Assembly (NCBI RefSeq): GCF_031769215.1 | Contig: NW_026781892.1 | Span: 124,001 to 188,000 of the forward strand | DNA from: Ylistrum balloti | Taxonomy: Eukaryota | DNA: 64,000 bases | Direction of reading: 5' to 3' | Part shown: positions 4,045-31,637 of the stretch, one piece after another | Layout of the letters: every line of letters begins with the position of its first letter | How positions within the stretch are numbered: the stretch's first letter is position 1 | The notes under the pieces: generated by a model | What the model saw: only the letters and a program-made list of their open reading frames with translations | Databases searched by the model: none | What the model was told of the DNA's origin: nothing | Made by a program: the position numbers and the translations under genes

Positions 4045-5217
4045 CCTAATAGAGGCAATACACAAAACAGCTGGAGGTGGGACACAAGCCACACTGGCCT
4101 GATTCCACTAGTAAGGCAATACACAAAACAGCTGGAAGTGGGACACAAGCCACACTGGCTGGAGGTGGGACACAAGCCACACTGGCTGGAGGTAGGACAC
4201 AAGCCACACTGGCCCGATTCCACTAGTAAGGCAATACACAAAACAGCTGGAGGTGGGACACAAGCCACCCTGGCCCGATTCCACTAGTAAGGCAATACAC
4301 AAAACAGCTGGAGGTGGGACACGAGCCACACTGGCCCGATTCCACTAGTAAGGCAATACACAAAACAGCTGGAGGTGGGACACGAGCCACACTGGCCCGA
4401 TTCCACTAGTAAGGCAATACACAAAACAGCTGGAGGTAGGACACAAGCCACACTGGCCCGATTCCACTAGTAAGGCAATACACAAAACAGCTGGAGGTGG
4501 GACACAAGCCACACTGGCCTGATTCCACTAGTAAGGCAATACACAAAACAGCTGGAGGTGGGACACAAGCCACACTGGCTGGAGGTGGGACACAAGCCAC
4601 ACTGGCCCGATTCCACTAGTAAGGCAATACACAAAACAGCTGGAGGTGGGACACAAGCCACACTGGCCCGATTCCACTAGTAAGGCAATACACAAAACAG
4701 CTGGAGGTGGGACACAAGTCACACTGGCTGGAGGTGGGACACAAGCCACACTGGCTGGAGGTGGGACACAAGCCACACTGGCTTGAGGTGGGACACAAGC
4801 CACACTGGCCCGATTCCACTAGTAAGGCAATACACAAAACAGCTGGAGGTGGGACACAAGCCACACTGGCCCGATTCCACTAGTAAGGCAATACACAAAA
4901 CAGCTGGAGGTGGGACACAAGCCACACTGGCCCGATTCCACTAGTAAGGCAATACACAAAACAGCTGGAGGTGGGACACAAGCCACACTGGCCCGATTCC
5001 ACTAGTAAGGCAATACACAAAACAGCTGGAGGTGGGACACAAGCCACACTGGCCCGATTCCACTAGTAAGGCAATACACAAAACAGCTGGAGGTGGGACA
5101 CAAGGCACACTGGCGGGAGATTCCACTAGTAAGGCAATACACAAAACAGCTGGAGGTGGGACACAAGCCACACTGGCTGGAGGTGGGACACAAGCCACAC
5201 TGGCCTGATTCCACGAG
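4045..5217. repeat. 61-bp minisatellite with an internal 27-bp sub-repeat of variable copy number
   Basis: gattccactagtaaggcaatacacaaaaca + (gctggaggtgggacacaagccacactg)n. Confidence 0.97.
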
Positions 5218-6699
5218 TAAAATGAACGACAATTGTATTCAATCTTTTATCAACAATAATACTGATCATTATTTGACACAACAGACGTTTTGAAATGTAC
5301 CTCTAGCAAGAATTCCCACTTTTTTTCATTCCAAACAGTCGTGTTTGTATGGAATAATCCATCTTGTCTGTTTTCCACAATATCCTTTATGCTGTAAAAA
5401 AGTACTTTTGTCACGACCAGTCACTGATGCATATCACTAAAACAATAGTGATGCTCGATGTTCTAACACTTCTTATAGATTAGTTGCACAGGATTTACTG
5501 GCATACAATCCATATTGATGTTCTGAAAATAAATTGGTGATGTCTATGTGTTGAACAAGGATGTCTCGAACAATCCTTTACACAATTTTCCTAACCACAG
5601 AAGTTCAAACTAATAGAGTGATGATTCCCCATTTGTAAATTGGCTGCATTGGGTAACTTAAAATTTGGGATGTGGGATCACCTAGGTGAGACCTTGCACA
5701 TATCAAAATGTTACTCTAACACCTGCATAAGGTTTTTTTCTCATGTTTTGCTTACTGGCAATCCCCAGAAAAACCAGTACCCTGAGGCAAATTCACAATA
5801 GCAAAAAGTAAAAAAGTAGCAGGGTTCACATCAGCAGTCACCAATATCACATTTTGTGATTAGAAAATAAAACTGGCAAAAAAAAAGTTAGTTTTTAAGA
5901 TTTTTCCAGTAACAAATTATCACCACTAATTAGGGAAACTCTTATTAAAAATGAATCGAGAATTCAGCTAAAACTGATCGATTGGTGTCTTATCCAGGTA
6001 AATTCACAGCATAATCAACTGTTCTATCATGACCAATAATTCCCTATGACCAGCAGGTTCCCAGCGAACAGTTTTAGACAATAGACTAGGGTCTAAACAG
6101 CTACCCCAGAGCATCTGAAATGATGATAAATGATACAATTATCATTAGCAATCCATCTACTGAAACAAATATTACATTTAACAAACGCCATGTTTAAATT
6201 AAAGGATTTTTATTTAAAAAAAACAAAATCTGGAAAAAAAATTGCAAAAAATGTACCCATCACTGAAGTGAGTACAAAAACAAAGAAAAAAAAAAGGATG
6301 ACATTGTCATCAGTTGTATAAAAATTGTCACATGTAGATGTAGAAATAAAAGGCTAATTAAGAAATTCTCCTGAACATTTATTAAAATATACAGACTGTA
6401 TACTTAAATTGGATATGTTGCTAGAATCATTATCACCGCATCGTGTCAGTTACTCTGAAGCTCAAACTGTCAGGTTAAATAGCAATCTTGACCTCTTGTT
6501 TTATCATGTTGGAGATGCTTATTTGATATAGTTGTTTGATGTACATGGCCTCCTAAACATTGCTTATGAAAATAAGTAGAATTGACGTCACAGGGGAAAA
6601 TGTCGATACCTGTACATCATGCAACACATCAATCACTTTCTTTAATCATTATTTAAAGATTTTCTGTGACCATTTATAGACTTGGAAATTTATGTCTTT

Positions 6700-10300: not shown

Positions 10301-13300
10301 ATAGTAATACCCAGCAATAATGGAATAGTCCATAATAGCAGTACATATAGTAATACCCAGCAATAATGGAATAGTCCATAATAGCAGTACATATAGTAAT
10401 ACCCAGCAATAATGGAATAGTCCAAAATAGGAAGATTATCATTGCAAGATGAGAATTTTTCAATGATAACAAAAGCACATTGTATTAAAAATCTTCAATG
10501 AATGAAAACACTCTGTGATTGCAATATAATTTTCTTTTTCATCAAAATTCTTGACTCAATCTTCTTTGATAAGGATCAGTCAATTAAATTTTTGTTGCCA
10601 GACTTAATTGTTTTAATTCATTTCACATTCTTTTTGAAAACTGATAGCAGTATTGCTTTGATCCACTCTGAAAGTGTTGATTCTGATGTACAGGTTAGTA
10701 GGTCAGATATTAAAGTATTTCTTTGGTGTTCTCTGATATTGTTTATTGTGATATTTAAACAGAGAGCATACAGCATAACATGTCATAACCTACCTCCTCT
10801 TCTGCCACATCTGTTCAAAAGCATCAGCCAACTCTACATTGGAAATTTCCTCAGCATCTTGAAACTTCAGAAAACCATCTCCACCATGACCTGCACAAAA
10901 ACACCAGTCCGACATATAATGATTCAAACATGCACCAATACACCAGACATGTAATGCCATGACCTGCACCAACACATCAGTAAGACATATACTACCATGA
11001 CCTGCACCAAAACACCAGACATGTAATGCCTTGACCTGCCCAAAAACATCAGTAAGGCATATAATGCCATGACCTGCACCAAAACACCAGACATGTAATG
11101 CCATGACCTGCACAAAAACATCAGTAAGACATATACTACCATGACCTGCACCAAAACACCAGACATGTAATGCCATGACCTGCACAAAAACATCAGTAAG
11201 GCATATAATGCCTTGACCTGCACAAAAACACCAGTAAGGCATATAATACCTCGATCTGCATGTAATGCCATGACCTGCACCAAAACATCACTCAGACATG
11301 AAATGCCATGACCTGCACCAAAACACCAGACATGTAATGCCTTGACCTGCACAAAAACATCAGTAAGGCATATAATGCCTTGACCTGCACAAAAACACCA
11401 GTAAGGCATATAATACCTCGATCTGCATGTAATGCCATGACCTGCACCAAAACATCAATCAGACATGTAATGCCATGACCTGCACCAAAACACCAGACAT
11501 GTAATGCCTTGACCTGCACCAAAACATAACTCAGACATGTAATGCCATGACCTGCACCAAAACACCAGACATGTTATGCCATGACCTGCACCAAAACACC
11601 AGACATGTAATGCCATGACCTGCACCAAAATATCAGTCAGATATGTAATGCCTTGACCTGCACCAAAACATCACTCAGACATGTAATGCCATGACCTGCA
11701 CCAAAACACCAGACATGTAATGCCATGACCTGCACCAAAACACCAGACATGTAATGCCATGACCTGCACCAAAACATCACTCAGACATGTAATGCCATGA
11801 CCTGCACCAAAACACCAGACATGTAATGCCATGACCTGCACCAAAACATCAATAAGGCATATAATGCAATGACCTGCACCAAAACACCAGACATGTAATG
11901 CCTTGACCTGCACCAAAACATCAGTCAGATATGTAATGCCTTGACCTTCACCAAAACATCAGTCAGATATGTAATGCCTTGACCTGCACAAAAACATCAG
12001 TCAGATATTTAATGCCATGACCTGTACCAAAACATCAGTTAGACATGTAATGCCTTTACCTGCATGTAATGCCATGACCTGTGTGTATCTGTGGTGATAG
12101 GTGTGTATCTGTGTCGACAGATGTGTATTCTGTGGTGATAGGTTTGTATTCTGGGGTGAAAGGTGTGTATCTGTGGTGATAGGTAGGTATCTGTGTTGAT
12201 AGGTATGTGGTGACAGGTATGTATTCTGTGGTGATAGGTGTGTATTCTGTGGTGACAGGTGTGTATCTGTTATGATAAGTGTGTATTCTGTGGTGATAGG
12301 TATGTATTCTGAGGTGATAGGTTTGTATTCTGTGGTGATAGGTATGCATTCTGAGGTGATAGGTTTGTATCTGTTACAATAAGTGTGTATTCTGTGGTGA
12401 TAGGTATGTATTCTGTGGTGATAGGTATGTATTCTATGGTGATAGATGTGTATTCTGTGATGACAGGTGTGTATCTGTGTTGATAGGTATGTATTCTGTG
12501 GTGGCAGGTATGTATTCTGTGGTGATAGGTATGCATTCTGAGGTGATAGGTTTGTATCTGTTACGATAAGTGTGTATTCTGTGTTGACAGATGTGTATTC
12601 TGTGGTGATAGGTATGTATCTGTGTTGATAGGTTTGTATTCTGTGGTGATAGGTTAGTATTCAGTGGTGAAAGGTGTGTATCTGTGTTGATAGGTATGTA
12701 TTCTGTGGTGACAGGTATGTATTCTGTGGTGATAGGTGTGTATTCTGTGGTGATAGGTATGTATCTGTGGTGATACGTATGTATTCTGTGGTGACAGGTG
12801 TGTATCTGTTACGATAAGTGTGTATTCTGTGGTGATAGGTATGTATTCTGTGGTGATAGGTATGTATTCTATGGTGATAGATGTGTATTCTGTGATGACA
12901 GGTGTGTATCTGTGTTAACAGATGTGTATTCTGTGGTGACAGGTGTGTATTCTGTGGTGATGGGTGTATCTGTGGTGACTTGTGTTTCTGTGGTGACAGG
13001 TGTGTATCTGTGGTGACTTGTGTATCTGTAGTGACAGGTGTGTATCTGTGGTGATGGGTGTATCTGTGGTGACAGGTGTGTATTCTGCAGTGGGTATTTT
13101 ATTGTGGCAATGTGAAGTTTGTCATACCTGTCATATAAACAAGAACGTTACTCCTCTCATCAGTCAGTAGGCGTTTTGATCGAGGTGTACTTGGTGGCAG
13201 TCGTCCTGTGAGAACACGGATGAAGTTTTCAACCGTAACCTGATAAACACAACAAGAAGGGAATTTGATTTCTTCTCAAAAAACATGTAATGAACTTTTC

Positions 13301-15413
13301 TGTTTGTATAATAAACTATGTATTAACAGACAGTCATCTAACTCAGTGCTCCAGATAACTTTTTGACATGTGGGGTTTTCACTCCTACCTTTATAAATTG
13401 AGGGGTTTTTTCACCCCTGCCTTCATCAAGTGTATGGGTTTTTCCATATTAGGGTAACACTGAATTTGTAAACATTTTTGACAGCGCCATATTTGCTATG
13501 CGACTGGTTTATAATCACGATCAAGAAAGCGCTTGTTACGAGTTTCGTTTACTTGATAAGTGTCTGTTTGACTTAGATTATTGAGTTTTCTAACTACGTA
13601 ATATTGGAGCCGGACATTGACGCAGAGTCCGGATTTCGCACGGGTTAATGACGCAAATCTTTTTTTTTTCCTAGCGTGAAATTAGAAATATTGTGCGTGA
13701 AAACGCATTCACGCAGGCTATCTGGAGCACTGTAACTCCTGTATAATTATTGTAGTAAGTCTCAGTACATCTTATATAAACTTTGTAGTAAGACAAAGCA
13801 ACTTAATTCAAATATAAAATCTAGGGTAAAGCACAGCCACCTACTTCATATCCCCTGTAATCCACCTCCACATCATCTCCATATACATTGATTTGCTGGT
13901 TGGCATTATTGAAGACAGTTGCTACAACAAAAAAGAGTTTTTAATCATAATGAGAGAGAACAAAATCACCATCATTAATAAAATATCAGTGAGATGATTG
14001 AACATTTTGACAACTAACTTGACCTATCTAGCAGTGAATTGTGATATACCTACGTGTCCAAGGACTGTGGTAACTGGTGGAGGACTGTGAGGTGTGGATA
14101 ATTGTGAGGTACCCACATGGTGGAAGATTGAGAAGTATATATCTAGTGAAGGATTGTGAGGTACAGACCTAGTGGAGGATTGTGAGGTATGTATCTCGAG
14201 GAGGATTGAGAGGCATCTTCCTGGCTGAGGAAAGTGAGTTACCTTCCTTGCTCTGGATTGTGAGATACCTAACTGGCTGAGGATTTCAAGGTACTTCCAT
14301 GGTCACAGCTTATGTGGTACCTACCTGGTCGTGGATTGCGGGGATTACAGGCCATATCATCAGCTACCATCAGGATAATTTGACTGTTGAAGAAGATATG
14401 CTTTCATATCACATCAAGTATTGAATTCTAATGAAAAGAAGGTAACAACAATACACAGAGATGTATTCAATGATCAAGTGGAATTCAAATTCATTAATAA
14501 ATTTTGGAATTGAAAAAGACAATGAATCATTAATCATCAATTAATCAATATATAACAGTTACAGCTATATTAAGCATTAAATTGATGAAATAAAATTATA
14601 TTGCTGATGGAGATATCCACTGTTAAAGCCATAGATATTTATCATACACAAAAACATGATGAAGCAAATTCAGCATTAATAAGATCAGGCTCAGGTTTTA
14701 CACCCATGGGTAGTTGTATAGTAACATGTATATGGAGACTGACCTGTCAGGGATGCCCAAACGTTTGACACTTCTGTAGATGGACAACACATTAGCCACA
14801 TGGCGGTAGTTGAACCAGAATCTGGAGGTGTCCACAAGCACAGCCCAATTGTTTGTATGGCCACTGGTGAAAAATTCATCCGGATTGACCTGAAATGTTG
14901 AAGTCCTACTAATAACCGGTAGTATTTAATATGAACCAGTTTTTCACGTAAAGTGGAGAAAAATCATGAACTCTTAAGGTTGTTAATTACGAGTGTAAAT
15001 CACAATAATTTATTGAATAAAACAATTATGCATTATCGTTCAAAACTGACAGGAATACGTACCACCCGAAAATATAACTAAGGTACCTAAATACTGGACG
15101 TAAAACGCGTTATTTAATGAATAAATAACTAACTAACTAAATAAAAATACTGGGGACTTATTATATCGTAATCGACCGGGAAGGAAATGTTTTCGTCAAA
15201 TCCGGTAACTTCACAATATCGTCGATACGTTGGCAATCTGAAAAGCGAATTTCTCAAAGCGAATGATTTATTAAACATTAACAATAGCGGAGAGTGCCAG
15301 CACAGAGGAAAGGTTCTTACCGATTCAGAATGTGTATGCAAAATAAACAGTGTCAATAAAATCGCTACTTGGAAATACCGACAGCACCCCGGAACTCGTA
15401 TGGGAGCTGCCAT
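7268..15413 (-). CDS. PIGK: GPI-anchor transamidase catalytic subunit (caspase/legumain-like C13 peptidase), complete 10-exon CDS, about 353 aa
   Basis: Exons assembled by hand with GT-AG boundaries and consistent phases: 15413-15321, 14889-14744, 14383-14325, 13921-13845, 13239-13128, 10890-10794, 10004-9887, 8389-8279, 7916-7738, 7337-7268 (1062 nt). Diagnostic motifs: [32 protein letters not shown], catalytic GHGG and [21 protein letters not shown]. Confidence 0.96.
7738..7916 (-). CDS. PIGK: PIGK exon 9 ([42 protein letters not shown]...)
   Basis: 179 nt, phase 0 to 2; the donor position at 7737 is inferred from phase. Confidence 0.9.
8279..8389 (-). CDS. PIGK: PIGK exon 8 ([37 protein letters not shown])
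   Basis: 111 nt, phase 0, GTAAGT donor. Confidence 0.94.
8810..8950. repeat. (TA)n-rich compound repeat
   Basis: atattactgtatac(at)n units. Confidence 0.9.
9887..10004 (-). CDS. PIGK: PIGK exon 7 ([40 protein letters not shown]; catalytic Cys)
   Basis: 118 nt, phase 2 to 0, GT-AG. Confidence 0.95.
10155..10405. repeat. 46-bp minisatellite, about 6 copies
   Basis: agcagtacatatagtaatacccagcaataatggaatagtccataat. Confidence 0.95.
10794..10890 (-). CDS. PIGK: PIGK exon 6 ([32 protein letters not shown]; catalytic His)
   Basis: 97 nt, phase 1 to 2; 3' end of track ORF 10790-11242. Confidence 0.95.
10885..12080 (-). repeat. ~34/35-bp minisatellite containing the PIGK exon 6 splice acceptor, about 35 copies
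   Basis: Minus-strand unit gtctggtgttttggtgcag|gtcatggcattacat. Confidence 0.95.
12080..13090. repeat. 20-21-bp minisatellite
   Basis: gtgtattctgtggtgataggt variants. Confidence 0.93.
13128..13239 (-). CDS. PIGK: PIGK exon 5 ([37 protein letters not shown])
   Basis: 112 nt, phase 0 to 1, GT-AG. Confidence 0.95.
13344..13732. mobile_element. MITE (389 bp) with CAG-starting TIRs and 5-bp TSD, hAT5-like
   Basis: TIR CAGTGCTCCAGATA (13344-13357) / TATCTGGAGCACTG (13719-13732), flanked by TAACT on both sides; in PIGK intron 4. Confidence 0.8.
13845..13921 (-). CDS. PIGK: PIGK exon 4 ([26 protein letters not shown])
   Basis: 77 nt, phase 1 to 0, GT-AG. Confidence 0.94.
14040..14340. repeat. Degenerate ~26-bp repeat related to the PIGK exon 3 donor junction
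   Basis: ggattgtgaggtacctacctggt-like units abutting the exon end. Confidence 0.65.
14325..14383 (-). CDS. PIGK: PIGK exon 3 ([20 protein letters not shown])
   Basis: 59 nt, phase 2 to 1; contains the Cys that links to PIG-T in orthologues. Confidence 0.93.
14744..14889 (-). CDS. PIGK: PIGK exon 2 ([48 protein letters not shown])
   Basis: tttcag acceptor, gtcagt donor, conserved GPI8 sequence. Confidence 0.95.
15321..15413 (-). CDS. PIGK: PIGK exon 1 (signal peptide [31 protein letters not shown])
   Basis: ATG at 15413, hydrophobic signal peptide, GTAAGA donor, 93 nt, phase 0. Confidence 0.88.
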
Positions 15414-15425
15414 TTTGAAGTATAA

Positions 15426-15494
15426 GAATGTGACATTCTGCAGCTCTGAATTTTTTAGTCAGCTTCTAAAATTTATCTTTAGTTTCGTATTTTT
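15426..15494 (+). repeat. Left terminal inverted repeat (69 bp)
   Basis: gaatgtgacattctgcagctctgaattttttagtcagctt...tttagtttcgtattttt; reverse complement of 31117-31185 with 8 mismatches. Confidence 0.88.
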
Positions 15495-17829
15495 ACTGCG
15501 ATTGCGCATCTCACTCACTTCCGTATGCAAAATTGATTTGCCGCGAATATTTTAAACCGAATACAGTGAAATGTTACGACAGCAATTAATTCCCTGTTGA
15601 TTACCGTGGTAATGCATTTATTACAACGCTATGCTATTGCCAAATTAATGTTTTGTTTAGTTTTATACACCTCATATGGTGTTTGATATTTTACCACAAA
15701 TGAAACCCGCCCACCCACATTTATTTGAATCTTCGCTGGCCATTAAAAAGTCGTAGTTATATTTTCCGTCAGAGTTTGATGCATACATATAGTCATAGTT
15801 TCACTGTTAGAAAATAATAGAATTTGGTTTCCATGAAAGGTGTTCTGTACTGAACGTATGATACATTGTATTATACGTCCCTGGTATTTATTTCATTTTT
15901 TTATTCGTCCTTGTTTCAGTCATCCAGTGTTCTCCTGCCTGGAACCATCACGACCATGGATGACCATTTGTAATCTTTGGTAATCTAAAAAAAAAAAATC
16001 ACAATGGAAACAAACTTGTAATCGTGTTATATCACTGTGACAAGTGAGCTGGCTGGTTCCAATGGCATGACTAAATTTATTTGACAGTTCTACATGGATA
16101 GCCTGAATGTGTGTATTTCATGTTTCTGTGTCATATACATAATAAAATGAAGGAAACCCTATCTCATTACAATAGTATGTTAATTATATTCAAATTGTTT
16201 TAGACATTATGATGTATAGATTCTATGTTATAAGGAAAGGGCGTTAACAATACATTACTTGTCTTCTGACAATAAAAAACTGGAAAAATGAAAGGTCAAC
16301 TGTGAAAAACAGATAAACGGATATCAAAGAATGTCTTCACTGCATTTTTGAGAATGCATAGCAATCTACACAATCCATGTATTGAATTAATGAAAATGCA
16401 TAAACACTCATATAAGATCCATATTACTGACCACAGGTGTTGACATCCTGGGGTTTATACAGAGAGCCTATAGGACTTGCTCATAATGTCAAATATTTGT
16501 ATACTTCTGCAAATAGAAGAGAAATTTTAAAAAGGTTTACATTACTTTCCAAGTTCTAGTTCAAGTTTATTGGATCCTCAGATACATGGAAAAAAGAGTA
16601 AAATAAATGGCTAATAATAATGTATTAATGATACGCATCATCTTTTTAACATTTTACCAATAGAAATAGAGATGAAAAAACAATATAGTTAATATACCGT
16701 GTGTACGTTGGTAGAAGCAACCAATAGCCACTCTATACTGTGCTAATTCATTACCCATGGTCATCAAAAGTTACATATGTAAAAGAGTAGCCACCAGTTC
16801 CATCCACCAAAGTTTTACAGTTTGTCAGACTATTGACAATATACCCAGTATTGAGTATAACATAGAGGAGATAAGAACAGAAAAGTCTTAAGATAGGAGA
16901 TAAAGGAAAATAAAATAGGAAAATGTAAAGAGAACACATGGATATCATAGGAGTATCAGGTAGTGTGGTGGAGAACAGATATAACAAACATACAAATTCC
17001 AAGTTTGTAATATAACTTCAGACAAATACTTAATTCGTAATATAGCACCAAACTAATACTAATCTTCAGACGCATACTAAATTATTAATCTTAACATCAG
17101 AAATCGACCAAATTTGTAATAATAATTTCTGATACTGACTTTGTAATATAACATCATAAAATCACCCCTTTGTCATATAACCAACACTATTGAAATGTAT
17201 ACAATAACACACGTGTATACTATACACGCCTATGAAAACGACGATTTTTTTTATGCTTGTCTTCGACGAAGTTCGAGCGTTTTATTTGACGCTGTCGCCA
17301 TTATAGAAAGGTTATTTTTTTACTGTTTTTTTATTAATTTAAATATAACTAATCAGTCACTGAACAAAAATAAAGTACAACATGCAGTAGCAGATATACC
17401 GACATTTTACCTGTAGAATTTTGACGTCCTGACCGAGAATCGACACGGAAAGGACAACGGTTGGAAAATATACATGTATGACAGTATCAAGGCTTGATAT
17501 TTTCCCCGGTTTTGTAAAATATTCGTCCGTCCATTGTCCATAGTGAATGGATGTGGTTGTCTTGTCGCAGTTTATTTAACCGACCGACAAGGGCAGATCT
17601 TGGCTTGGTTAGACTTTCCGTTATACATATTTTGTCTTTGAGATTTTTACAAAGTTTTTTGTTCTGGAAGACCTTGTGTCGGTCAGAGTATCTGACAAAC
17701 CGCGCAATTATCGTTGTCGTGCCATTCCTTATACCTCCAAGAATATGAGACCTGGATAAATCATCTCGAGTAAGGTTTACTTTGATTTCGCGGGCAATGT
17801 TTATAACTGCATCATGAGTATCGAATGAC

Positions 17830-18344
17830 GATATATCTCCCCTGGGGACAGGGACATTGTGATCAGGGCGGTACGTCTAGAGTACTGCTGTTGGTCTTCT
17901 AGTTCCATTTCGAGTTCTCCTATCTTGGATTTTAGTAAGTTCAATTCTGATGCTTGATTTTGGATACGGTCAATGAGTGGAGTTACGTCGTCATTTACAT
18001 GTTTGGTGACTATACTACTCAGTTGGCTATCATTGTTAATGACAGAATTACACTGCACTTTGTATGAGGGGCTGGATAGTGTGAGTAAGCGACTGTTCAA
18101 TTAAATTAGAGACCATTGTTGCTATGGTTGGAGCAAGCATCTGCGCAAAATCGTGCATGAATCCTGACGTAAACATCGAATCATCATTACTAGTCGATCC
18201 TAGGTCAGCACGCTTATTTTCTACTATCTCGGGGGACAGCGGACTGGACATTTGTTTCCGTTTGTCTTTCAAATGTTCGCTAACAGGGGTTGCAAAAACT
18301 AGGGCCTGCTGTAATACGCAGACACGAATCGTCCTTCGACGCAC
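17830..18344 (-). mobile_element. Non-LTR retrotransposon ORF1 fragment (frameshifted, truncated)
   Basis: ORFs 18048-18344 and 17801-18100: KRKQMSSPLSPE N-terminus, coiled coil, and the ELEDQQQYSRR motif typical of LINE ORF1. Confidence 0.55.
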
Positions 18345-19344
18345 TCATCATAAACTTCTGACTACCATACAAATAAAAGTATATCGAAGTCCGTGCAGTG
18401 CTCAATATTATCGATAATGTCGACGTGACTTTATTTAGAATAGGTCACCTTACACTCAGGTATACAAATCACAAATTTGTCAATATTCAAACTATTGCAT
18501 ATCTTGTACAAAAATTTTTGGTCCAATTACATTAAAAAGTTCCTCATGCACACTTACTAGGTTTCAAATTTCAGAAAAACATTCCTTAATATCCGTAATT
18601 AGAAAAAATTATTACCACCACACAAACACCGGTCAGCTCACTCAGGCCATCACGTTTTCCACGCCCTATCACACCAATAAATTACAAAACAAAAATATAT
18701 CGATATCATCGTCATCAAACTCTTGAAATTTTCATCTTTGCGTCCAATGTGTGTTTTTTTTTAGATAAATTTAAGAACCAGGCTTTCCTGGGGCGCTTTA
18801 TTGTTTCAATAACACAGTGTACACCTGAGCTGTGCGTCAGGCACGTGCAAGAATTTTGCGTCCCAAGATTGTATTGACCAATGAAAACGTTAAAGAAAAG
18901 GGACAAGCAATGAGCTTGGACTATTGTGAAATCTGCTCAGTGCTGCGACAAAATGTTAAGCGTTGGGCACGAGACTGGTCATTCAGAAAACACCTGCTGC
19001 GAAACCGACATGTAAGTGACATTTTTCTCATATATTCATGTACTAAGTGTAAAACTTGAAGAAATAAGAATTCCTTTATGTTTTAAACATACCTTTAAGA
19101 TGTATGTTGTGACTGTAGCGTATACACACACGAGAAATAGTACATGTTTGTCCCTTTGTGCGACCCAGTGTGGCCATACAAATCTTATTGTACTCTTGTC
19201 GTGTTGATATCTCATTCTTTTCACGGGAATAACAGAACATTTGTGAGTTCTTACAGCTAAAGAGAGTCTCGCCATAGTCATGTCGTAGTTTAAATTAAAA
19301 CATTGTGATAACCATGGAAATAATTTGTGAGGGAAATTACTGTT

Positions 19345-20090
19345 TTCTGGTATAACAAAGAAACCTTTTAGTCCTAAGATGTATGAAGCCCCCAGTCCTA
19401 TAAAGGTTAATGGGCGGGGTCATTTCTGCTTTCTTATTTATAACAAAACGAATAGTCCTAAGGGGTAAGGATAGCCACCCCAGTCCTATATAATATTTGG
19501 TTTATTGTTGTTTTACGTCCTATCGACAACTAAGGTCATTTAAGGACGTGCCAGGTTTAGATGGTGGAGGAAGCCGGAGTACCTGGGGAAAACCACCGAC
19601 CTGCGGTCAGTACCTGGCAACTGCCCCACGTGAGCCTCGAACACGCGACCCAGAGGTGGAGGGATATAGTGATTAATGACATTACGCCTTAGCCACTTGG
19701 CCACCGCGACCCCCTATATAATATAATGGGCGGGACCATTACTGCTTTCTGTTATAACAAAACGAATAGTCCTAAGGGGTAAGGATTGCCCCCAGTCCTA
19801 TATAAAGGTTCATGAGCGGGATCATTACTGCTTTCTGTTATAAAAGACTAGTAGTCCTCAGGGGTAATGGAGGCCTCAGTCCTATATATAGGTTTTAGGA
19901 CGCGACCATTACTGGTTTCTATTAATAACAAGAGACTCAGTCCTCAGGGGTAAGGATAATCCTCAGTCCATACATAGGTTTAAGGACGGAACCATTACTG
20001 CTTTCTATTATTACAAGTGTTTAATAGTCCTAAGGGGTAAGGATAGTCCCTTCATTATTGATCCCTGTTATAACAAAGAGACTAACATCC
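19345..20090. repeat. Degenerate ~85-bp tandem repeat interrupted by the SINE
   Basis: ataacaaaacgaatagtcctaaggggtaagg...cagtcctatata...ccattactgctttc units. Confidence 0.8.
19497..19714 (-). mobile_element. tRNA-derived SINE (V-domain-like central motif), full length, 218 bp
   Basis: Minus strand: A-box GGTGGCCAAGTGG, B-box-like GTTCGAG, motif GGTTTTCCCCAGGTACTCCGGCTTCCTCC, A-rich tail; 10-bp TSD TATATAATAT (19487-19496 / 19715-19724). Confidence 0.85.
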
Positions 20091-21645
20091 CTAAGTGTAT
20101 AGACGTAAGTCTCGGCCTCCTGGGGAGGGAGGAGCTGGACACAATATGGGAAAGTGAGTGAATGCTTAAAATCCTAGCCCTCCTATCGTTATTCTGGATT
20201 TATATTGCAGATGTTTTACCCTCGTTTCCAACAGCTGATCAAAATATTCCATATCGAATTAAAAAAAATACGATAATAACAAAAAATTGTAATGGCCACT
20301 CACTGTAATGGTGACTTAGCCAGTCTTTGATACAAATGTCATAAATTTTCTGGTTTTAAGAGTTTCAAGTACTCAACAATGTTTCTTCCGAAATCCATTT
20401 CGATTTATGGCCAACTGCAGGGAGCGGGTGATATATTTCATTTTTTTTTTAGTTTTAGTGTTTGCAGTTTTATTACTGGTGGACATTGTTGAAATTGGTC
20501 ACATGACTGTTTAGGTCCAGGGGCCCCTTGTTAAAGAGAAAACATCCATCAGTTGCTTGTTTTATAATCTTAATAAGCTTCAGTACATGAAAGATAAGGA
20601 ATACAGGCTCAATTAGCATTTGGATTTCCAATTTTTGCAGCTCTGTTTCTGTCAAATTAGTTTAAGCATTCAGTTAGATTTCTTGCAATGATTGCATCAA
20701 CTGAATGAAAGCAGAATTTTATTTGAAATGTAATACTTGTAAAGTTTTGATAAAGATAACTTCAAGAAAAAAATAATTTTGGAAATCAAGAGATTTCAAC
20801 ACAAATCAACAATATTTTACAGATGGATCCTTGAAGGAGCTGACCTGGTGTGGATGTACTAGACCTCACATGGCTGCATTGGATTCTGCATTGGATTGGA
20901 GAATTACGGCTACTGGTTGAAAAAATAATCTGCTACAAAATTGAATCAAGACGACAATGTTGATGATGAAGATTAATGAAGATGATGATTGGGATCAATA
21001 CTACCGGCAGGTGTAATTCGGTGTGTATTCTTTGGTTGAGATTGTGATAATAGACACTAACAGTGTTTCTCTTTAACTGCCCCATCCAATCCAACCCGGC
21101 CATTGTCTATATTTGCAATATTACCGGCAAGTTTGGCCTCTGGTATCGTTTGTTGTGATTCAGTGGGTATTCCTCATAATATTTTACGGCTTAATACTGC
21201 GATGAGCTGACCATGCATGGCTGTACTGGAGCTGTTGTAGCTGATTACCTTCGCCTGGCTGCCCTGGATTGGAGGATCATGGCTGTAGGTTGCAGTGAGG
21301 TACATTTGTACCGAGTTTAGGTTTGTTTTGATTAATTGAATAATTGGTGGGCTTACAAAGGTGTTCAATTTGATCACGATGAATGTCAAATAGTGTGAAT
21401 GTTTTGTTGAAAACTCTTCTAAAATCATTTGTGTGTGATTTTTTTTTTAGATTTTTTGTCGAAATAATCACCATGGTGGTGGATTATCACCGATTTTACC
21501 AAAACTGGTGTGTATTTAGTGTTTTTGTTGATAATCTAAAATAATTGATAATCTTATAATAATGTTTTACAGCTTAATCCAGGGTTGCCCTGGATTGGAG
21601 GGTCGTGGCTGAAGGTTGCAGTGAAGCTTTCTTTACAACATTACA

Positions 21646-22860
21646 CAGCCTGCAAATCAGGCATTCGATTTTTCGTCCATAGCGGCGTTCGGTTATCAAC
21701 GGTTTTATCCCCATCTTTGGTAAGACGGTGTTATTATCAATTAATCAAATATATTCACACTTCTCAGACTTATATATTGCAGGTCCGGCGACAGGTACAG
21801 GCCGACGTCCCTGGAAGTGAACTGGTCGGTCAGGTACATTTTTACCAAAATAGAGGTACGTAGGCTCTCTCTTCTAAACCTGTTGAAGGAATGAAGTCTA
21901 TATTGTGTGTCAGACTGAAGTTCTTACAAGGCTACATTTAGACCCTACTGGGAACTCTAGCAATTGGAGGACTGGACGAAGTTGGTTTTTTCATCAGGTC
22001 CGCTCAAACTGTGTACTTCTCCAACATCGCAAGTTCCTTCGGCAGGTAAATGTCCGTGAGTCGTATACAGATATTTCTCCGAACATGTGGGGATTTCAGT
22101 TGGCACGCATTCAGTGCAGAAATCGTTATTCCATACACACTCATGGGATGAGAATGTTTTGTATGTGGCTTAGCAGGGTTTTCTTGCTTTGAGGGGTTGT
22201 GAAACAGGAGTCGAATACGGTGCGACTCGGCTGATAGATCGACCGAGTTCATAATTCGATTGTGACGAGAGAAGGTATGGTGTTTGTTTGCGCCGAATTT
22301 GAGCTTTTTTCTGTACATGGTGTTCTCTTCCCCTGCGAACAGTGTTAAAGTTGATACAAGCAGCGGAGCTTTGTTTTCAACAATACGCGGCCTGCAAATC
22401 ACAGGCAATCGGTTTTTCGTCCATAGCGGCGTTCGGTTATCGACGGTTTTACCCCCATCTTTGGTAAGACGGTGTTATTATCAATTAATCAAATATATTC
22501 ACACTTCTCAGACTTATATATTGCAGGTCCGGCGACAGGTACAGGCCGACGTCCCTGGAAGTGAACTGGTCGGTCAGGTACATTTTTACCAAAATAGAGG
22601 TACGTAGGTTCTCTCTTCTAAACCTGTTGTAGGAATGAAGTCTATATTGTGTGTCAGACTGAAGTTCTTACAAGGCTACATTCAGACCCTACTGGGAACT
22701 CTAGCAATTGGAGGACTGGACGAAGTTGGTTTTTTCATCAGGTCCGCTCAAACTGTGTACTTCTCCAACATCGCAAGTTCCTTCGGCAGGTAAATGTCCG
22801 TGAGTCGTATACAGATATTTCTCCGAACATGTGGGAATTTCAGTTGGCACGCATTCAGAG
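21646..22860. repeat. Tandem duplication, 744-bp period (about 1.6 copies)
   Basis: 21648 gcctgcaaatcaggcattcg... recurs at about 22390; the duplicated ORFs 21585-21863/22284-22607 and 21905-22192/22649-22882 are near identical. Confidence 0.9.
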
Positions 22861-23290
22861 CAGAACTCGTTGCTGTCATTGAGTTGACCATACCGTGGAT
22901 GGAAAGAACAGAAGCAGCCCATGAGAGGAAGAAAATCCAAGTATGAAGAGCTACTGGCAGAATGCAGGGAGAAAGGCTGGAAAACTTGGAACTTCCCGGT
23001 AGAGATTGGGTGTAGAGGCTTCCCAGCACCGTCTGCTTGGAGAATGCTCAGTGCACTGGGTGTTACCGGCTTCACTAGAAGAAGGGCAGTGCAGCGGCTC
23101 ACCCAGGCAGCAGAGAGGGCATCCTGTTGGGTTTGGATGAAGAGGGACGAGAGTAGCTGAAGACCCACCACCGACACGCAGTGACTGATCACCACTGTGG
23201 ACCCCCTCCCCCCATACTGAGTGTATCGAGTAAGGGGTCGAAACACGCGATGAAGGATGGCCTCGGCTGAGGACGTCGGCGGTGTAGCAG
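22855..23290 (+). mobile_element. 5'-truncated HERO/R2-clade non-LTR retrotransposon (restriction-like endonuclease C-terminus plus 3'UTR)
   Basis: VAVIELTIPWMERTEAAHERKKSKYEELLAECREKGWKTWNFPVEIGCRGF...AAERASCWVWMKR*, followed by a 3'UTR with gtcgaaacacgcgatga. Confidence 0.8.
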
Positions 23291-24597
23291 CAATTCCATC
23301 TAGCTGGTTGTACGTACCAGAACTGAGGTAAAGATAATTAACAAACCAGTTCTTGAGACAATGATGAATGGTAACTCTTTCCTACACCAGGGAAGATCTG
23401 AAAAAGATCCAAGGACATAAGAACCTATAACTGACCACCTTAGGCCGGAGGATCTCGACTGAAGGAAAGATTGTGAATATGACAATGATATACCCCTTGT
23501 ATAGACTACTGATATTAACACCCGTGGTGTAATTTGATGTAACACAAGTAAAAATGATGCTGCAGAAATATATTTGAATTAATGTGATTGTAATTATTGT
23601 AGGTGAAATAAAATGTCCGGTGGAAGGACTGAAATCTCAAATCCCGTGTCGGCGAGTCACACTTGGCACGTTAAATAGAACAGGCTAGTTAGGTATATAA
23701 TAGTTGTAGTGGTAGGTTAGGAATTCTGTGACACTCCAAATAATATATATTTTTTTCTCCCTTTCTTAAAGACAAATTGTTTTGGGCTCCAATCTTTGTA
23801 ATAAAACAAAATCGGTTATATCATTTCTGTGAGAAATTGTAAAGCACTAAAATTAAGCAATGGCAGTTTGCCTATAATTTTGCCTCTCCTTCTAATAAAA
23901 AAATCTTCTGTATTTGTTTGGGTTTGCATGAAACTGAAATGATATCCATGTTTGCTACTAAAAAAGCATGCCATGTAGTAAAACTTTTGAAATTAATAAA
24001 TCAAAAATAGTACCGGTTATATCTCTGTCTTCGACATTGCGTAAGCAGTGAAATAGATTGAATTCAACGTGATCAATGTCACAATGTCATAGGTCAAATA
24101 ATGGCAAATGTTTTATTTCTTTAAAACTTTAGAATACTTACAATGTTATAGATAATTACAGAATTATTTGGGCAGCAAATGTGATAAAAAAAACTCGCAT
24201 CAAGTACAGGCATATGCTGCACTGCAATCGGGTTTCAGTAAAAGGAAAATTAGGAACCCAATTTACAAATGCAAAAAAAGTTCTGAAATATTTGTTAAAT
24301 TCATATTGAGATAAGAATAGAATATTATTTATTTTAGAACAGATTAGATGAATAAAACTTTTTTTTTTAATGTTGCTTTTTTTTGCTAGCTTAAAGTAGT
24401 GGTCCTTTAATGAGGAGGCCTCCACGTGGCAAGGACTGGAAACAGCTTACACTCATTATTGTTAGTAGGCTGGCTGACATCCTCATGCAATATGTTGAAT
24501 TTTAGGAACAATTATAAATCATGCTTTTTATTTATTTTCAAAAGTTTTGCATGATACATAAGAAAAACAAGAAATGACATGCATACCAACATTCACG

Positions 24598-24651
<54 letters not shown>

Positions 24652-24763
24652 CAATCAATTCATCATCATCATTCTCCATCCATTCATCATCATCCATCAA
24701 TCCATTATCCTTAATCAATCCATCATCATCCTCATCCTCAATCAATCCATTATCCTCCATCCA

Positions 24764-24810
<47 letters not shown>
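24598..24810. repeat. (CAT)n compound trinucleotide microsatellite
   Basis: Two long CAT runs with a degenerate middle. Confidence 0.97.
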
Positions 24811-25167
24811 GAATGTCCATTGGTTCTATAAAGTTAGATATATCATTTCCAGCATCACAACAATGTAAGTAGTTTCTATAGACATGAAATATTGGGATAC
24901 ATTTCACCCGAGGATGAATTGCTTCATACATCGAACACCAGACTGATAAGTTGCAGTTGAGAAAGGAATTAAATTAGCTGGTTTTTCATGCTGTTGGTCT
25001 AAATAGAATGAAACGACACCAAAATGGTATACTCTTTACTTTGAATTTCAGGTAATGTTTTCAATAGTAGATATTTCTGCTTCAGGAATCATGGTTTTAT
25101 TTCAGGAATTACATCCTTTACCAACAATCAATACACACAGCATTCATCATACATATTTCGATAGTTT

Positions 25168-25560
25168 TAACAAGAGGCCCATAGGACATGTATCACTCAC
25201 CTGGCTATATAATATGCCTACAGGTTGGATACTTGAATTATTTCCCATAGAGGTTAATTCTTATATTGTAACTGTCTTTCTCTTTTAATGCCCAGTAAAA
25301 GTTTATAGTTATTGGGCTGGGATCTCAACTGTTTTAAAGATAAGAAACAAGAAAGTAAGTCCCTAGAGGTGTGCCACATCCAAGGGTCAGTTCTTACATC
25401 ATGAATGTATTATATCACTTGATGCCAAGCAATTAGATATATGGTTATGGGTTGGGATTTAAAACTGTTTCAAAGATATAACCCTGAAACTAAGTACCGA
25501 TGGGTGGGGCCAGACCTAAGTGCTATTTCATGATTGTGTTTATGTTACACAATAAGGTAT
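25168..25560 (+). mobile_element. Degenerate bivalve-type interspersed repeat (Helentron/HINE-like terminus)
   Basis: aacaagaggcccataggacatgtatcactcacctg; a related copy starts near 29186 with similar downstream sequence. Family assignment is from recalled terminus motif only. Confidence 0.4.
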
Positions 25561-28500
25561 TGATATTTATATATCAATTTATTCAACTTATTGTAGGATT
25601 AGTATCGGGAAGTAGGACACTGTAGCTAAGTCATGGTTCTGTAGTAGATCAATTAAATAGGCTAATTATTATTGGTGATAGGCGAGGAGTGCAGTAGCTC
25701 AGGGTTTGTAGAGCATGTGGTGTAAATTATACTATCAGGCGGAACGGGCGTAGCTTCCTTGATAATCAAACTTATGCAATTGCCCATTCGGACAGTGACC
25801 ACTAGGTGTTAAGAGTAATTATCAAGGGCTATTTCCAGTAACAAACTAAGTAGGGGGAATCTCAACCTCGCACCTCGAGCATGGATGGTTATACTTCAAC
25901 AATCAAATCAGCTTGCAACAAGTGAAGTCCATATAAGGGGATCGCGGGACATAATCGGTCAAGATGAGATAAATAGAAGCTAGATTCTGGGGATAGGACA
26001 GAAGGGGTTTGGACACCCGACTGCACGGTCATAGATGGCTTAGAGAAGGGATTGGGACACCCCAATAGATGGGCCCTAGGTAGCCCACCAGACAAGCTCC
26101 CATACAGGTTATACCATGATGGCTTGTATAAGGAGTGGTTATGTTAGTATATACCTAGAAGTACTGTTTTTATGCAAGGACAGTTTTGATACAGAGACTG
26201 TTTTATGAGACACAATGCGAAGTGGAGTGAATATATGTGTATGTTGATGAGATGTTGCCTTTGTACATGACTATTAACATCTAAATAGACATGACTATTA
26301 CCAACAGTTATGTGTTACGCCACTGTGTTACAGTTTATCGCTTGATGCCCATCAATGCTATGTGCATATGGTCATGGGAGCAGAATTTTGACTGTTTCAG
26401 AATTTAAGAATTAAACCTCACCCCAAATAATATTTCAGACCTAATTTGGTTGAAATCTTGGGTTTTAAGCAGGAGTCGTGTTTTAAAGGAAAAGTTTACA
26501 CATGGCAATTGACAATGCACGATAGCAATAGGTCATCTGTACCCTTTGGGTAAATATAAATTATTAAGTATTGTCTAAATATAATTATAGTCACTATGAT
26601 AGTAAGATTCTCTTCCAATTAATTTTCCACGAAACCTAGGTAACTTGCAATCATCAATAATAATGACATTTTGGAAACATTTACTTCACAAATTCCTTAC
26701 AAAATTCTGCTTCACATTAAATAAAACACTATAAATTTCCACGTATAGTGCACACCTTTTCTTAGTTTAAAGTGTTTTGTCGAAAAGGGGGTGCATACTC
26801 CACAGGAATATGCCATTCTTAGGGTTATTCTCGAGTTCTCTGATCCGCCATATTGGACTACCCCCTTCACCCAGTTAGAGGCATCTGTCATATATGATAG
26901 ACTGAAGATAAAAACAAAGAATAAAACAAATTTTGAATGTTTTAATGCAAATAAGTTTCATTATTATTTATATAAAGCTAAGTAACAAAAAGTTTTAAAT
27001 TTTATCAGAACAGGTTCAATAGTACTTACGACTTGCACAAATGGAACAGTAGACCGATAAATCCATACAGCACCAAGTAATTATAAGCAGTTTTTAGTAC
27101 TGAAGTCGCTTAACACAGTCACAGATCACTTAACAAAAATCCTTCAAATTCCTCATCATCGTCACTGTTAAAGAAGGATGCCACATCAAAGTTTGCCTCT
27201 ATAGTATTTTCATTGTCGTGTTAAAAGAGGTCGTCATCCATCATCCTCCAAGTCAACATCAATGGTGGGTCCACTATCATGGGTCATCTGTTCACAGAAC
27301 GTCCAATCCCATTGCTGCTTTGAAAGTGGTGACCTTATGACCTCTCTGAATCTGCATCTGTAAAACAATTTCATCTCACATTCATTTATTAGATATTTGA
27401 CTAAAAACTTAAGTATTTTTATCTTAACAACATAAATCAAATGAACTTCTACCATATATGACGGTAAGATGGAATTTGTTTTTCTTATGTTGGGAACATC
27501 AAAAAAGCCTCGAGAAAATTTCTAATAAGCTAAGGTATTTCTTTATGCATGTACAGACCATCCTGCAAAAGATACCAGTATTCCTGTAACCAAACCTGCC
27601 AATGTTCTAGAGGTAAGCTATCAATGGTTTCCTGTACTTTATCTATTAAATACAAATGAATACAATAACCAATGATAAGAAAAGTATGTACATGTGTATA
27701 TCATATGTGTATATCAAGATCAAAAGGTATTACCCTGCATCTTCGCAAAAACGTACATTAAAATTCCATATAATAGCAAAAATATCAAAGGAGATATACA
27801 ATGTTTCAAAATATACAGAGAGAGTGTGAAGCATCATGAATGTCTACCAAAAGCATAATTACCTATCAATGGTTTGTTTAGACATCAGGATAATACAGCA
27901 TTGTTTTAACTGAAAATTTTTTACACAGGACACCTTAAATGTTGGAGAAAACTATATTTGAATATGTTAAATTAGTTTTTTGAACATGGATCTTTTGTTT
28001 TGATAATCTGTGGAATCCTCGGGTATGCTGCATTTGTTCAAATGCACAATCTATGCATTCTAACATACCATCAGCACATCAATTATGTCAGGCTAGTGTG
28101 AATCAGATGTGGGATAAATATGATTAAGCTTTATTTGACTCCTGTATGCTGAAGATGACCCTGGGGCCATGAAATTCACAACTTTGGTAAGCACTTTAAG
28201 ATGCTTTCAGTTATGAAAAGTGTTTGATTCTACAATACCTGGGTGCTGAGAAGAAGACTTTAGAAATCGGAGTCAATTTGACCCCACCCTTCAGGGCCCT
28301 GTAGGATAGGGACTGTATAATTCACAATTTTTGTTCATCTTAGGCCAGGAAAGGTTACTGCAAAGGTGATAGCAATAGGTCACCACGAGGCCCAATAATT
28401 CAAATGACCTAACTAAAGGGAATCTAGATATAAGTAAGAGAAATATCCCTATATTACTTCAAAAAATGATAGCAAGGATTGTTTATGGATGAACAGACCT

Positions 28501-28704
28501 GAGATTAAGGGCAATTTTAACAGCTCACTATCTAATGATGGGCTAGAAATGTCTAAATGTTTACACCTGAAGCCTGAGGAACATCATTTAGACAAGATCA
28601 TAAAATATGACAACAGTGTCTGCAATGACTTGATATTTAATACAAACATACTTTAACACTTTAACTGTCTGCTATGCAAATCATACTGAAGACTGAACTT
28701 GTTT

Positions 28705-28858
28705 CAGGGCTCTCGATCTGCCAGATTTGGGGCCAATAGTCGGCCCCATTCCCAGTGCAAAATAGTATCTTTTTTCCCAATTATAAGGAAAACGCCATTA
28801 TTTTTCCCAATTCTAAGGGCCCCGGGCCCCAGTCCCAAAATGGGGTGTGAGAGCCCTG
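28705..28858. mobile_element. MITE (154 bp) with CAG-starting TIRs and 5-bp TSD
   Basis: TIR CAGGGCTCTC / GAGAGCCCTG, flanked by TGTTT on both sides. Confidence 0.7.
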
Positions 28859-30599
28859 TGTTTTAGCTGGATCCAAATAGCTGTCCATCTGTGTAACTGG
28901 TGTGCTGAAGACCATGATGATGGGATCAAAATAGAGTGATTTGATCACAGGGTCATGTGTTGTCCATTGTCTACCTGAAAAAGAGACAAGTGAATCATAA
29001 ACAACATTAAAAATCAAAACAGATAGTACTGATTGAGAATATAAATAAAACAAATTGCTTGAATAACCGTGTAACTATATATTTACCTTTGATATTACCA
29101 AATGCATTAGAGATTACATTAATTTTTGCTTAACAACAATGATCTGATCACAGCAGCTGCACTGTACAGTAAGTAGTACACTAAGAACAAAGGTCCCATA
29201 GGCCTGTATTACTCACCTGGATCTTAAAGCCCAGTAATGGTACACATGCCTTTAGGTTGGGTATTTCAAATATTTCTAAATTAAAACTCAATCAATTAAA
29301 CCCTTTCATGTCGAAAGACCAATGAGTAAATTCTTGTATCATTACTGTCTTTCTCTTTTGATGCCAAGTAAGAGTTTATATGGTTATTGGGTTGGTATCT
29401 TGGCTATGTCAAAAATATGACCCAGAAATAATGTCCCTAAAGGTGTGCCATACTTAAGAGGACATTCTTGCATAACAAATGTGTTGATCTCTTGATATCA
29501 ATAAATTCTATATATATAATGTTATGAGGGAGATTTCCACCATTTTAAAGGTATAACCTAAAAATTAAGTTCAGAGTTCTTCATCATAAATGTGTTTATC
29601 TCTTAATGCCCAACATGGTATCTATAGATATGGGATGGGGATCTCAACTGTTTCAATAATATAACACAGAATCTGTCTCAAGGTGTGGAGCCAGGCCCAA
29701 GGGCCAATTTTAAATGACTTACTGAATCAAAACATAGGAAATCGAGCAATAATAAGATAGCCCTCTGACAGCCATTTTGTATAACTGATGAGATAAAATA
29801 AATGACTTATGATGTATTTTACAAATCTTCAATGAAATGAAAATGAAATGAAATGTTTCATCACTAACTTGCTTATTTTGCAAGTATATGTAAAAATATA
29901 AGTGAAAATATCACAATAAAATGACATTTTTGCTCTTTTGCCAATATTCTGTTTTAATTGACAGAAAAATTTCAGAACATACCAGTAAATACATAGAGAG
30001 AATTCAAGCTCCATGTAGATCTGAATTATGGGAAAACTTAAAAATGGCATATGACATTATATACTTGGTTAGAACTTAAGCTCAATGTGGAGTTAAACAA
30101 CTCTAAACATGGCGCAAGTTATCAATTTAAGTCCAGTTAACAGAAGTAAACTGCAGGTGGAAATAAGAATTTAAACTGTTTGTTGGAATGGCCATACAGA
30201 GATATAAAAACATTCCAAACTTGGTTTATGACGACAACTTATAAAGTTCCAAGCTAACCAGAAATTTAACATGCTGCAATTAATCAATAAATTCAAGTTA
30301 ACTGTATTTAAACTGTATGTGAAATCTGTTTGGTTATTATAGATATTCTGTTTTGTTATGATTGGTTTTTGTATTTGATGAGAAATTAACACTGATGTGG
30401 AGTGTTACACAAAAACTGAAGATTTTTCTAATTATATTGACATTTCAATTATCTTAACCATCTGACACATGTTTTCAGAGTATGATTTAGATGTGTGAAA
30501 ACTGCTTCTGACTTTTAACTAAAAGGTATAGAAATTATTTTATGGATCCAAATATGCACTAAAAATATCTCATTTAAACTAAATTTAGAAACAGATTGG

Positions 30600-30809
30600 T
30601 CATGTCAACAATAATTCAAGTTGTTTTCCTATATTATCTACAGTAATTTTATCTTTAAATGTACGCAAGGCAGCCAGGACCTCGTATATGCAGTCAACTA
30701 TACAACCACTTCTCCAAAGAAATTTGGATACTGTGGTGCCACAGATCAACTCATCATTATCATTCAATTGCCTTATATGCGAGGATCCTACAACTGCTAT
30801 CCTAACCAT
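30600..30809 (-). pseudogene. SGNH/GDSL hydrolase-like gene fragment inside the putative MULE
   Basis: MVRIAVVGSSHIRQL resembles SGNH block I (GxS-H) and FLWRSG resembles block II; block III is missing; preceded by a short intron-like gtacgt...ttaag. Confidence 0.35.
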
Positions 30810-31116
30810 ATTTTCAGAACAAAATCTGCTTTTGAATTGGCTTAACAAACGAGAAATAGAATGTTTTACGTACCCACGTGCTTGTAGACCGGCGTGAAAA
30901 GAAGTTTCAAACTTTCGAAATACTTTAATTTCGTTCGGGGAGTATGTCTCGGGATCATAGCAGTTACTTTTAAGGTACGTTTATACCAGGTTTCTGCAGT
31001 GTTCTGATAGGCAGGCTTGAAATTTACGTTATTTGTATGATTAAAATGGTAACCGCATGTGGCATTAAGTGAAAAAAGTATTAAGTATTGTAAACTGTAT
31101 AGTACATTTTAGTGGA

Positions 31117-31185
31117 AAAAATACGAAACTAAATAATAATACTAAAAGCTGACTAAAAAATTCAGAGCTGCACAATGACACATTC
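31117..31185 (-). repeat. Right terminal inverted repeat (69 bp)
   Basis: Includes a 27-bp perfect match aagctgactaaaaaattcagagctgca (31146-31172) to the reverse complement of 15439-15465. Confidence 0.88.
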
Positions 31186-31577
31186 GAAGTATAGTATATA
31201 TCACTCCGCGTATTTCAGTTTCCAGCAAACCTGCACTTTTTCTTATATTCTTTTTCTTTATTTCAAGTAAGATAACAAGTATTCAGAACTATGCCCAAAA
31301 ATGCGATACGCTGAATATAAAACAGTAGTATTGCACCTCTTATTACTTTATGAATCATTAAAAAATCAAGAACTTATTTTTCAGTATATGTGGCACACCG
31401 GAAGAAGATAAGTCCGCCAATTTTTGTTGTCCTTGGATACAGGCTGTTCTGTGCAGGTGCCCCATGAGAGTCTAAGTTGGAAAGTGATTTCCGACAATTC
31501 ATTTTACCAAACCGTAGAAAACAACCGACAAGATACCACGCAAAAAAGACTCGTACATTCGTGTCCGTAGTGGCAAG
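31186..31577. promoter_or_regulatory. AK5 proximal promoter/5'UTR; probable remnant of the PIGK-AK5 bidirectional promoter
   Basis: Lies between the right TSD and the AK5 ATG. Removing the element leaves 395 nt between the two divergent start codons. Confidence 0.5.
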
Positions 31578-31637
31578 ATGACTACGGATGATGCGAAATC
31601 CTATCTGTCAAAAAGACAGATCCCTCGACTCTTTGAG
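31578..31637 (+). CDS. AK5: AK5-like exon 1 (MTTDDAKSYLSKRQIPRLFE)
   Basis: aagATG start, GAG|GTGAGT donor, 60 nt. Confidence 0.92.

Follow-up and report, generated by a model that had tools for sequence, protein, structure and literature searches.

A 15.8-kb transposon-like element 12 nucleotides from the PIGK start codon separates PIGK from its head-to-head neighbour AK5 in a bivalve genome

PIGK, AK5 and the element between them

The window analysed here, a stretch of 64 kb containing no N, carries two genes in head-to-head orientation, PIGK being encoded on the minus and AK5 on the plus strand. The identity of PIGK rests on its exon 2 (14744-14889, minus), which matches residues 31-84 of the human GPI-anchor transamidase (E 5e-24) and aligns from position 1 of the Pfam Peptidase_C13 family, whose domain starts here. 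The coding part of exon 1 (15321-15413, minus), delimited by the sequence and by a spliced contig described below, comprises 31 signal-peptide-like codons and ends in the donor CG/GTAAGA; a word search with its 94-aa reading frame gave no match. It is followed, also on the minus strand, by exon 2 after an intron of 431 nt, by exon 3 (14325-14383) and by exon 4 (13845-13921). The exons with the catalytic His and Cys are present in the window with the reading frame unbroken, and the gene looks intact. Two features identify AK5: an N-terminal exon whose coding part of 20 codons (MTTDDAKSYLSKRQIPRLFE; 31578-31637, plus) opens at 31578 with the ATG, and, downstream of it, two adenylate kinase domains.

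The PIGK start codon lies at 15411-15413 (minus). It is the first in-frame ATG after a stop at 15459-15461, which falls within the inverted end of the neighbouring element, so that a longer PIGK reading frame is impossible. The initial annotation was right to take this ATG as the genuine start: it is backed by the upstream stop, by the 31-residue signal-peptide-like exon 1 and by the contig that joins exons 1-4. The peptide that it opens, MAAP or MSAP, is common to the six related assemblies considered below.

Repeats of other kinds are found in and around the two genes. Minisatellite arrays are many and long (1-1700, 3978-5250, 10790-13100, 32521-33324, 44143-46245, 50672-52030 and 61647-64000) and yield long spurious reading frames within and around both PIGK and AK5; one array adjoins the exon with the catalytic His of PIGK. 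In one of the related assemblies (L002:2239-10070) PIGK intron 1 measures ~7.7 kb, as against 431 nt in the window, and includes a mariner-type fragment (an HTH_48 match); in that lineage transposons have accumulated in the first intron and not 5' of the gene.

The element occupies 15426-31185 (15,760 nt) and is bounded by inverted ends of 69 nt (15426-15494 and 31117-31185), which match at 61 of 69 positions and differ at the other eight (12%). A 26-nt core common to both ends occurs in the window at these two places only, against none expected from shuffled sequence. The ends are flanked by a 9-bp target-site duplication identical at 8/9 positions, with the gene-side copy GAAGTATAA at 15417-15425 and the AK5-side copy GAAGTATAG at 31186-31194, the latter retaining the base found in the relatives at -12. 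Between the gene-side copy and the start codon stands only a 3-nt spacer, ttt (15414-15416), which agrees with the initial annotation in placing the ATG 12 nt from the element. In each of three public sequencing runs, 5-6 contigs with unlike flanks start at exactly 15426, and the left ~2.3 kb of the element has a depth 3-8 times the single-copy level; in two of the runs, X1 and X3, contigs entering from PIGK stop at 15455; the element is thus one copy of a family and its left boundary is exact. Other genomic copies, seen in the read contigs, are at least 90% alike to the left inverted end, and the likeness of the two ends is hence a property of the family. Selection holding both ends alike, as had been suggested, is not borne out, the 8/69 differences between them being no fewer in proportion than the 1/9 in the duplication.

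The interior is mosaic, and no transposase can be recognised in it: Pfam searches with 54 of its reading frames of at least 60 aa, the 10 largest first, returned noise only. The element is a non-autonomous or decayed DNA transposon. The label 'Mutator-like', which it had been given, draws on the 9-bp duplication as its sole basis: this length falls in the ~9-11 bp range of the Mutator-like elements (MULEs) and fits Merlin elements (8-9 bp) as well. The 69-nt inverted repeats of a multi-copy family also agree with a MULE, whereas a DDE transposase was found in none of the 54 frames of the interior. MULEs are present across molluscs (PMC10294476). The interior further contains an internal duplication (21552-22879) of two near-identical segments of ~300-340 nt, corresponding to the reading frames at 21552-21860 and 22266-22604 and their neighbours; a 226-aa reading frame without a family match adjoins it on the opposite strand.

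The arrangement in related bivalves and the conserved start-codon core

Six related bivalve assemblies (L001, L002, L003, L007, L008 and L009) were recovered by word searches in which the queries were the reading frames of exon 2 of PIGK and exon 2 of AK5; the contigs were taken from them with their flanks. PIGK and AK5 lie head to head in all six and no insertion is present, the two ATGs being 330, 334, 342, 354, 332 and 333 nt apart, respectively. In the window the distance is 16,164 nt, of which 395 nt are left after subtraction of the element together with a single duplication copy. If a bidirectional pair is defined as divergent genes less than 1 kb apart, the pairs of the six relatives qualify and that of the window does not. 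The remainder of the ancestral intergenic promoter is found at 31195-31577 and holds AAGGACAACAAA (31423-31434, minus) and CCGGAAG (31398-31404). These belong to a conserved block, made up of AAGGACAACAAA and, after it, the ETS-like (A/C)TTCCG(G/C), which in L001-L003 stands 186-234 nt 5' of the PIGK ATG and in L007-L009 at an equal distance from the AK5 ATG instead. In the window the block (31398-31434) is on the AK5 side, ~16 kb off the PIGK ATG. The insertion-free relatives with their compact spacing and the stranding of this block both indicate that the element split a conserved, compact bidirectional promoter, and they uphold the earlier claim that PIGK has been severed from its ancestral upstream DNA.

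Two further candidate signals in this region were rejected: a CCAAT box at 31415, which is absent from the relatives, and the native TATATA at 31195-31200, whose distance from the ATG is too short for it to set a start site. Beside the native upstream DNA, the AK5-side target copy (31186-31200) keeps an initiator-like CTATACT that points into the right inverted end; should the old promoter still be firing toward PIGK, its transcripts would enter the element. As for the age of the pairing, PIGK and AK5 are head-to-head neighbours on human 1p31 too, and a literature search finds the two names recurring jointly in 1p31.1 association papers; on these grounds the pairing may be very old.

What stays on the gene side is a short native core spanning -12 to +12 around the ATG (15402-15425, minus), delimited by an alignment of seven assemblies, the window included. 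It comprises CAAAATGGCAGC over the start codon and TTATACT, an initiator-like match whose A falls at 15423. The pattern CAA.ATG.C.GC.CCC is invariant in 7/7 assemblies. The proteins start with MAAP or MSAP and the rest of the signal peptide is unalignable across assemblies; that the first four codons are conserved could be due to a constraint on the protein instead. At the DNA level, CAAAATGGCAGC agrees at 10 of 12 positions with SAASATGGCGGC, the mammalian consensus of the TISU element as given in PMC3177215, and the relatives agree at 10-11 of 12, with L001 at 11; among the 2624 ATG triplets of the window only five (0.19%) score at least 10/12. In mammals TISU includes the start ATG, lies no more than 30 nt from the start site, is associated with leaders whose median length is 12 nt, and acts both in transcription, via YY1, and in translation (PMC2518114, PMC3177215). 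Position 10 of the motif varies among the bivalves (G/T/A), and a T at position 8 in L002, L008 and L009 disrupts the CCAT core; this variation weakens a reading of the motif as a YY1 site.

The second part of the core, an initiator-like CTAYTTY (pattern YYANWYY, with the A at -9 or -10), is present in four of five lineages and absent in L007. The target site of the insertion in the window coincides with this sequence, TTATACT being its gene-side copy. Hence, the insertion struck the probable start site, with the duplication leaving one initiator-like copy beside the ATG. Taken together with matches within the element, the candidate motifs at the PIGK start are ATGGCAGC, TTATACT, a TATA-like run and ACGGAAGTG.

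The insertion in other individuals and the spliced PIGK transcript

Contigs of public runs were placed on 13150-19100 of the window. In a k=31 graph such contigs break k-1 = 30 nt after entering a repeat, and those of run X1 (14564-15455) and run X3 (13150-15455) enter from PIGK and stop exactly 30 nt inside the inverted end. They concern the left junction only and carry 30 letters on the repeat side, against the 31 required for a bridge call. Their depth is about that of the unique flanks (17.6 vs 16.9; 14.6 in one contig), and no branch corresponding to an empty site is listed at the junction among the X1 and X3 contigs. From this full-depth, unbranched entry into the inverted end it follows that the insertion is shared by other individuals and looks homozygous in both. 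Since X1 and X3 lack a 394-bp element that the window possesses, they are individuals distinct from the reference; with the latter, the carriers of the insertion are three animals under two organism labels. For run X5 no contig crossing the junction is listed, and a contig on the inverted end has a depth of 4.4 vs 10.5. The divergence of the inverted ends and of the duplication (8/69 and 1/9) suggests that the insertion is not recent.

The 394-bp element is located in a PIGK intron (13339-13732), has perfect 13-nt inverted ends (CAGTGCTCCAGAT) and stands at ~750 times the single-copy depth. It is cleanly absent from X1, X3 and X5, where position 13338 is joined to 13733; the insertion is thus polymorphic, and the miniature element to which it belongs has a very high copy number.

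A search for runs on record as RNA found none holding this stretch. In run X6, whose label reads 'DNA?', a contig of 380 nt (record 25) joins 15416-15319, 14887-14744, 14383-14325 and 13921-13843, is identical to the window and has every joint at a GT..AG intron. A spliced PIGK contig with no depth over the introns marks X6, despite its label, as a cDNA or RNA run, and X7-X9, small runs related to it, are probably similar in kind. Thus, as the initial annotation presumed, PIGK exon 1 with this ATG is still transcribed, and it is spliced to exons 2-4.

The 5' end of the contig falls at 15416, 3 nt before the ATG, and carries no loose letters; it is the end of a contig and not a start site. The contig fails to reach the inverted end by 10 nt and includes neither letters of that end nor an upstream exon, and the depth of X6 over 15538-19100 is zero, which at assembly depth leaves no outward transcripts from the first 3.7 kb of any copy of the element. 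Given the mean word depth of 9, a long leader would have assembled further, and a very short leader is the simplest reading. This argument is independent of whether the animal carries the insertion, its genotype not being shown by the contig. A trans-spliced leader or an acceptor at 15416 was considered and rejected: the site has no AG and the contig no extra letters. The transcription of exon 1 despite the severed upstream DNA points to initiation at the end of the element or immediately beside it.

Initiation of PIGK and comparison with known systems

It had been held that PIGK transcripts must start either inside the element or on its far side. The loss of the old upstream DNA, from which that choice was derived, stands, but the choice omitted a third option: a core on the gene side that the insertion spared. 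The site of initiation and the sequences driving it are inferred, and at a probability of about one half our preferred reading is that PIGK starts within 10-20 nt of its ATG, with the spared core driving transcription and the inverted end serving as neutral or helpful upstream DNA. By this account, a DNA transposon generating a 9-bp duplication would have entered the compact PIGK/AK5 bidirectional promoter at about the PIGK start (-4 to -12). In this group of bivalves the PIGK core would be very small, consisting of the TISU/YY1-like element over the ATG and, in most lineages, CTAYTTY at -9/-10; it would have stayed on the gene side, with the duplicated 9 bp restoring the initiator-like part beside the ATG. 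Initiation may then occur at ~15423 in the 12-nt spacer or at ~15431 in the tip of the inverted end, and the resulting very short leader would bypass an upstream ATG at 15436. The inverted end, now occupying -13 to -80, may act as a minimal or permissive upstream promoter, and the ancestral ETS-type block, presumably activating, lies 16 kb away on the AK5 side. A start site in the 12-nt spacer, which in the terms of the initial annotation speaks against the inverted end as the promoter, is plausible because the conserved core is on the gene side and partly within the duplicated 9 bp.

A different division of labour, to which we give a markedly smaller but still appreciable chance, would have the inverted end supply both promoter and start, in the manner of the outward promoters of maize Mu elements. 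Everything 5' of -12 is indeed element DNA, PIGK is still expressed with a short leader, and the inverted end offers motifs at suitable spacings: an outward-reading TATA-like TAAAAAATT (15449-15457, minus), known by motif match only, 26-34 nt 5' of the initiator-like A at 15431 and that at 15423, the former belonging to a second initiator-like match, TCACATT; and perhaps, as a lead noticed post hoc, an ETS-like ACGGAAGTG just within the element (15516-15524, minus), ~105 nt 5' of the ATG. The sequence CGGAAGTG (15523-15516) occurs once in the 64-kb window, both strands counted. There is also the precedent of maize, where 20 of 33 Mu insertion alleles gave outward transcripts starting in Mu (bioRxiv 10.1101/2023.06.05.543741). 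Against these stand the spliced contig, which carries no letters of the inverted end, and the lack of any X6 contig on that end or the next 3.7 kb. The motifs are weak, after-the-fact matches in AT-rich DNA, as judged from the letters. A start 5' of 15436 would moreover include the out-of-frame ATG at 15434-15436 (minus), which opens a 23-codon frame overlapping the PIGK ATG; the two inverted ends are not unusually alike, and membership of the Mutator group is only putative.

The spliced contig bears on two further explanations. One, which we regard as unlikely, is that the insertion is a weak or null allele segregating in the population and that the PIGK mRNA comes from an insertion-free allele or a second copy of the gene. 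It gains from the silence of the X6 contig on the genotype of its animal, from X5 with no listed junction contig and a depth of 4.4 vs 10.5 on the inverted end, and from the polymorphism of the 394-bp intronic element among the same samples, which implies that transposons are active in the population; it has to contend with X1 and X3, whose contigs cross the junction unbranched at full depth, with three carrier animals under two organism labels, with divergence of the ends and duplication (8/69 and 1/9) that points to an old insertion, and with an intact reading frame and catalytic exons. The other, a start at the old promoter beyond 31186 with the element removed as a 15.7-kb intron, had been proposed on the strength of a donor at ~30872 and an acceptor at 15438. 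A GT in good context does exist at ~30872 on the minus strand, as does an AG at 15438-15439; the tract before that acceptor is nonetheless purine-rich, the resulting exon would open with the out-of-frame ATG at 15436, the relatives have no intron at this place, and the spliced contig ends at 15416 with neither this acceptor nor an upstream exon. We accordingly disfavour such far-side initiation and consider it very improbable.

The case amounts to a natural experiment on the minimal DNA needed 5' of the start codon of an essential gene: a promoter architecture kept in at least five bivalve lineages has been split, and yet the carriers are alive, apparently with the insertion on both chromosomes, and PIGK is spliced normally. 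It bears on TISU-type cores outside mammals, on outward promoters in the ends of animal transposons, and on whether an ETS block can act over 16 kb. More boldly, and only tentatively, one may suppose that the essential gene has lost its upstream promoter altogether and works through an initiator rebuilt by the duplication together with the TISU-like element, or through an inverted end turned promoter. If the former is true, TISU-type core promoters exist in molluscs and suffice there; if the latter is true, the locus is an animal counterpart of the outward promoter of maize Mu. On present evidence, the PIGK insertion is instructive as a case of event types already known; it is not a new kind.

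Three known systems offer comparisons. In the maize Mutator insertions (hcf106-mum1, UniformMu) as at this locus, a gene whose expression persists has at its 5' end a DNA transposon marked by inverted ends and a duplication of 9 bp; the role proposed for the element's end is that of a minimal promoter working with signals of the gene itself. The locus differs in being an old, apparently fixed or common insertion of 15.8 kb in an animal, with no MULE transposase found in the element and no transcript seen to start there, and in that the core of the gene apparently survived. The TISU genes of mammals are alike in having an ATG-containing motif (matched here at 10/12, and at 11/12 in L001) in a housekeeping gene with evidence of a very short leader, and the native PIGK promoter of the relatives likewise lacks a canonical TATA box; unlike in the TISU genes, the YY1-binding positions vary among the bivalves, and the function of TISU and YY1 is known from mammals only. 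Finally, the compact bidirectional promoters of housekeeping genes, of the ETS/GABP type, resemble the arrangement of the relatives, with 330-354 nt between the ATGs and (A/C)TTCCG(G/C) beside AAGGACAACAAA; in the window, by contrast, 16.2 kb lie between the two genes and only AK5 has kept the conserved block beside it.
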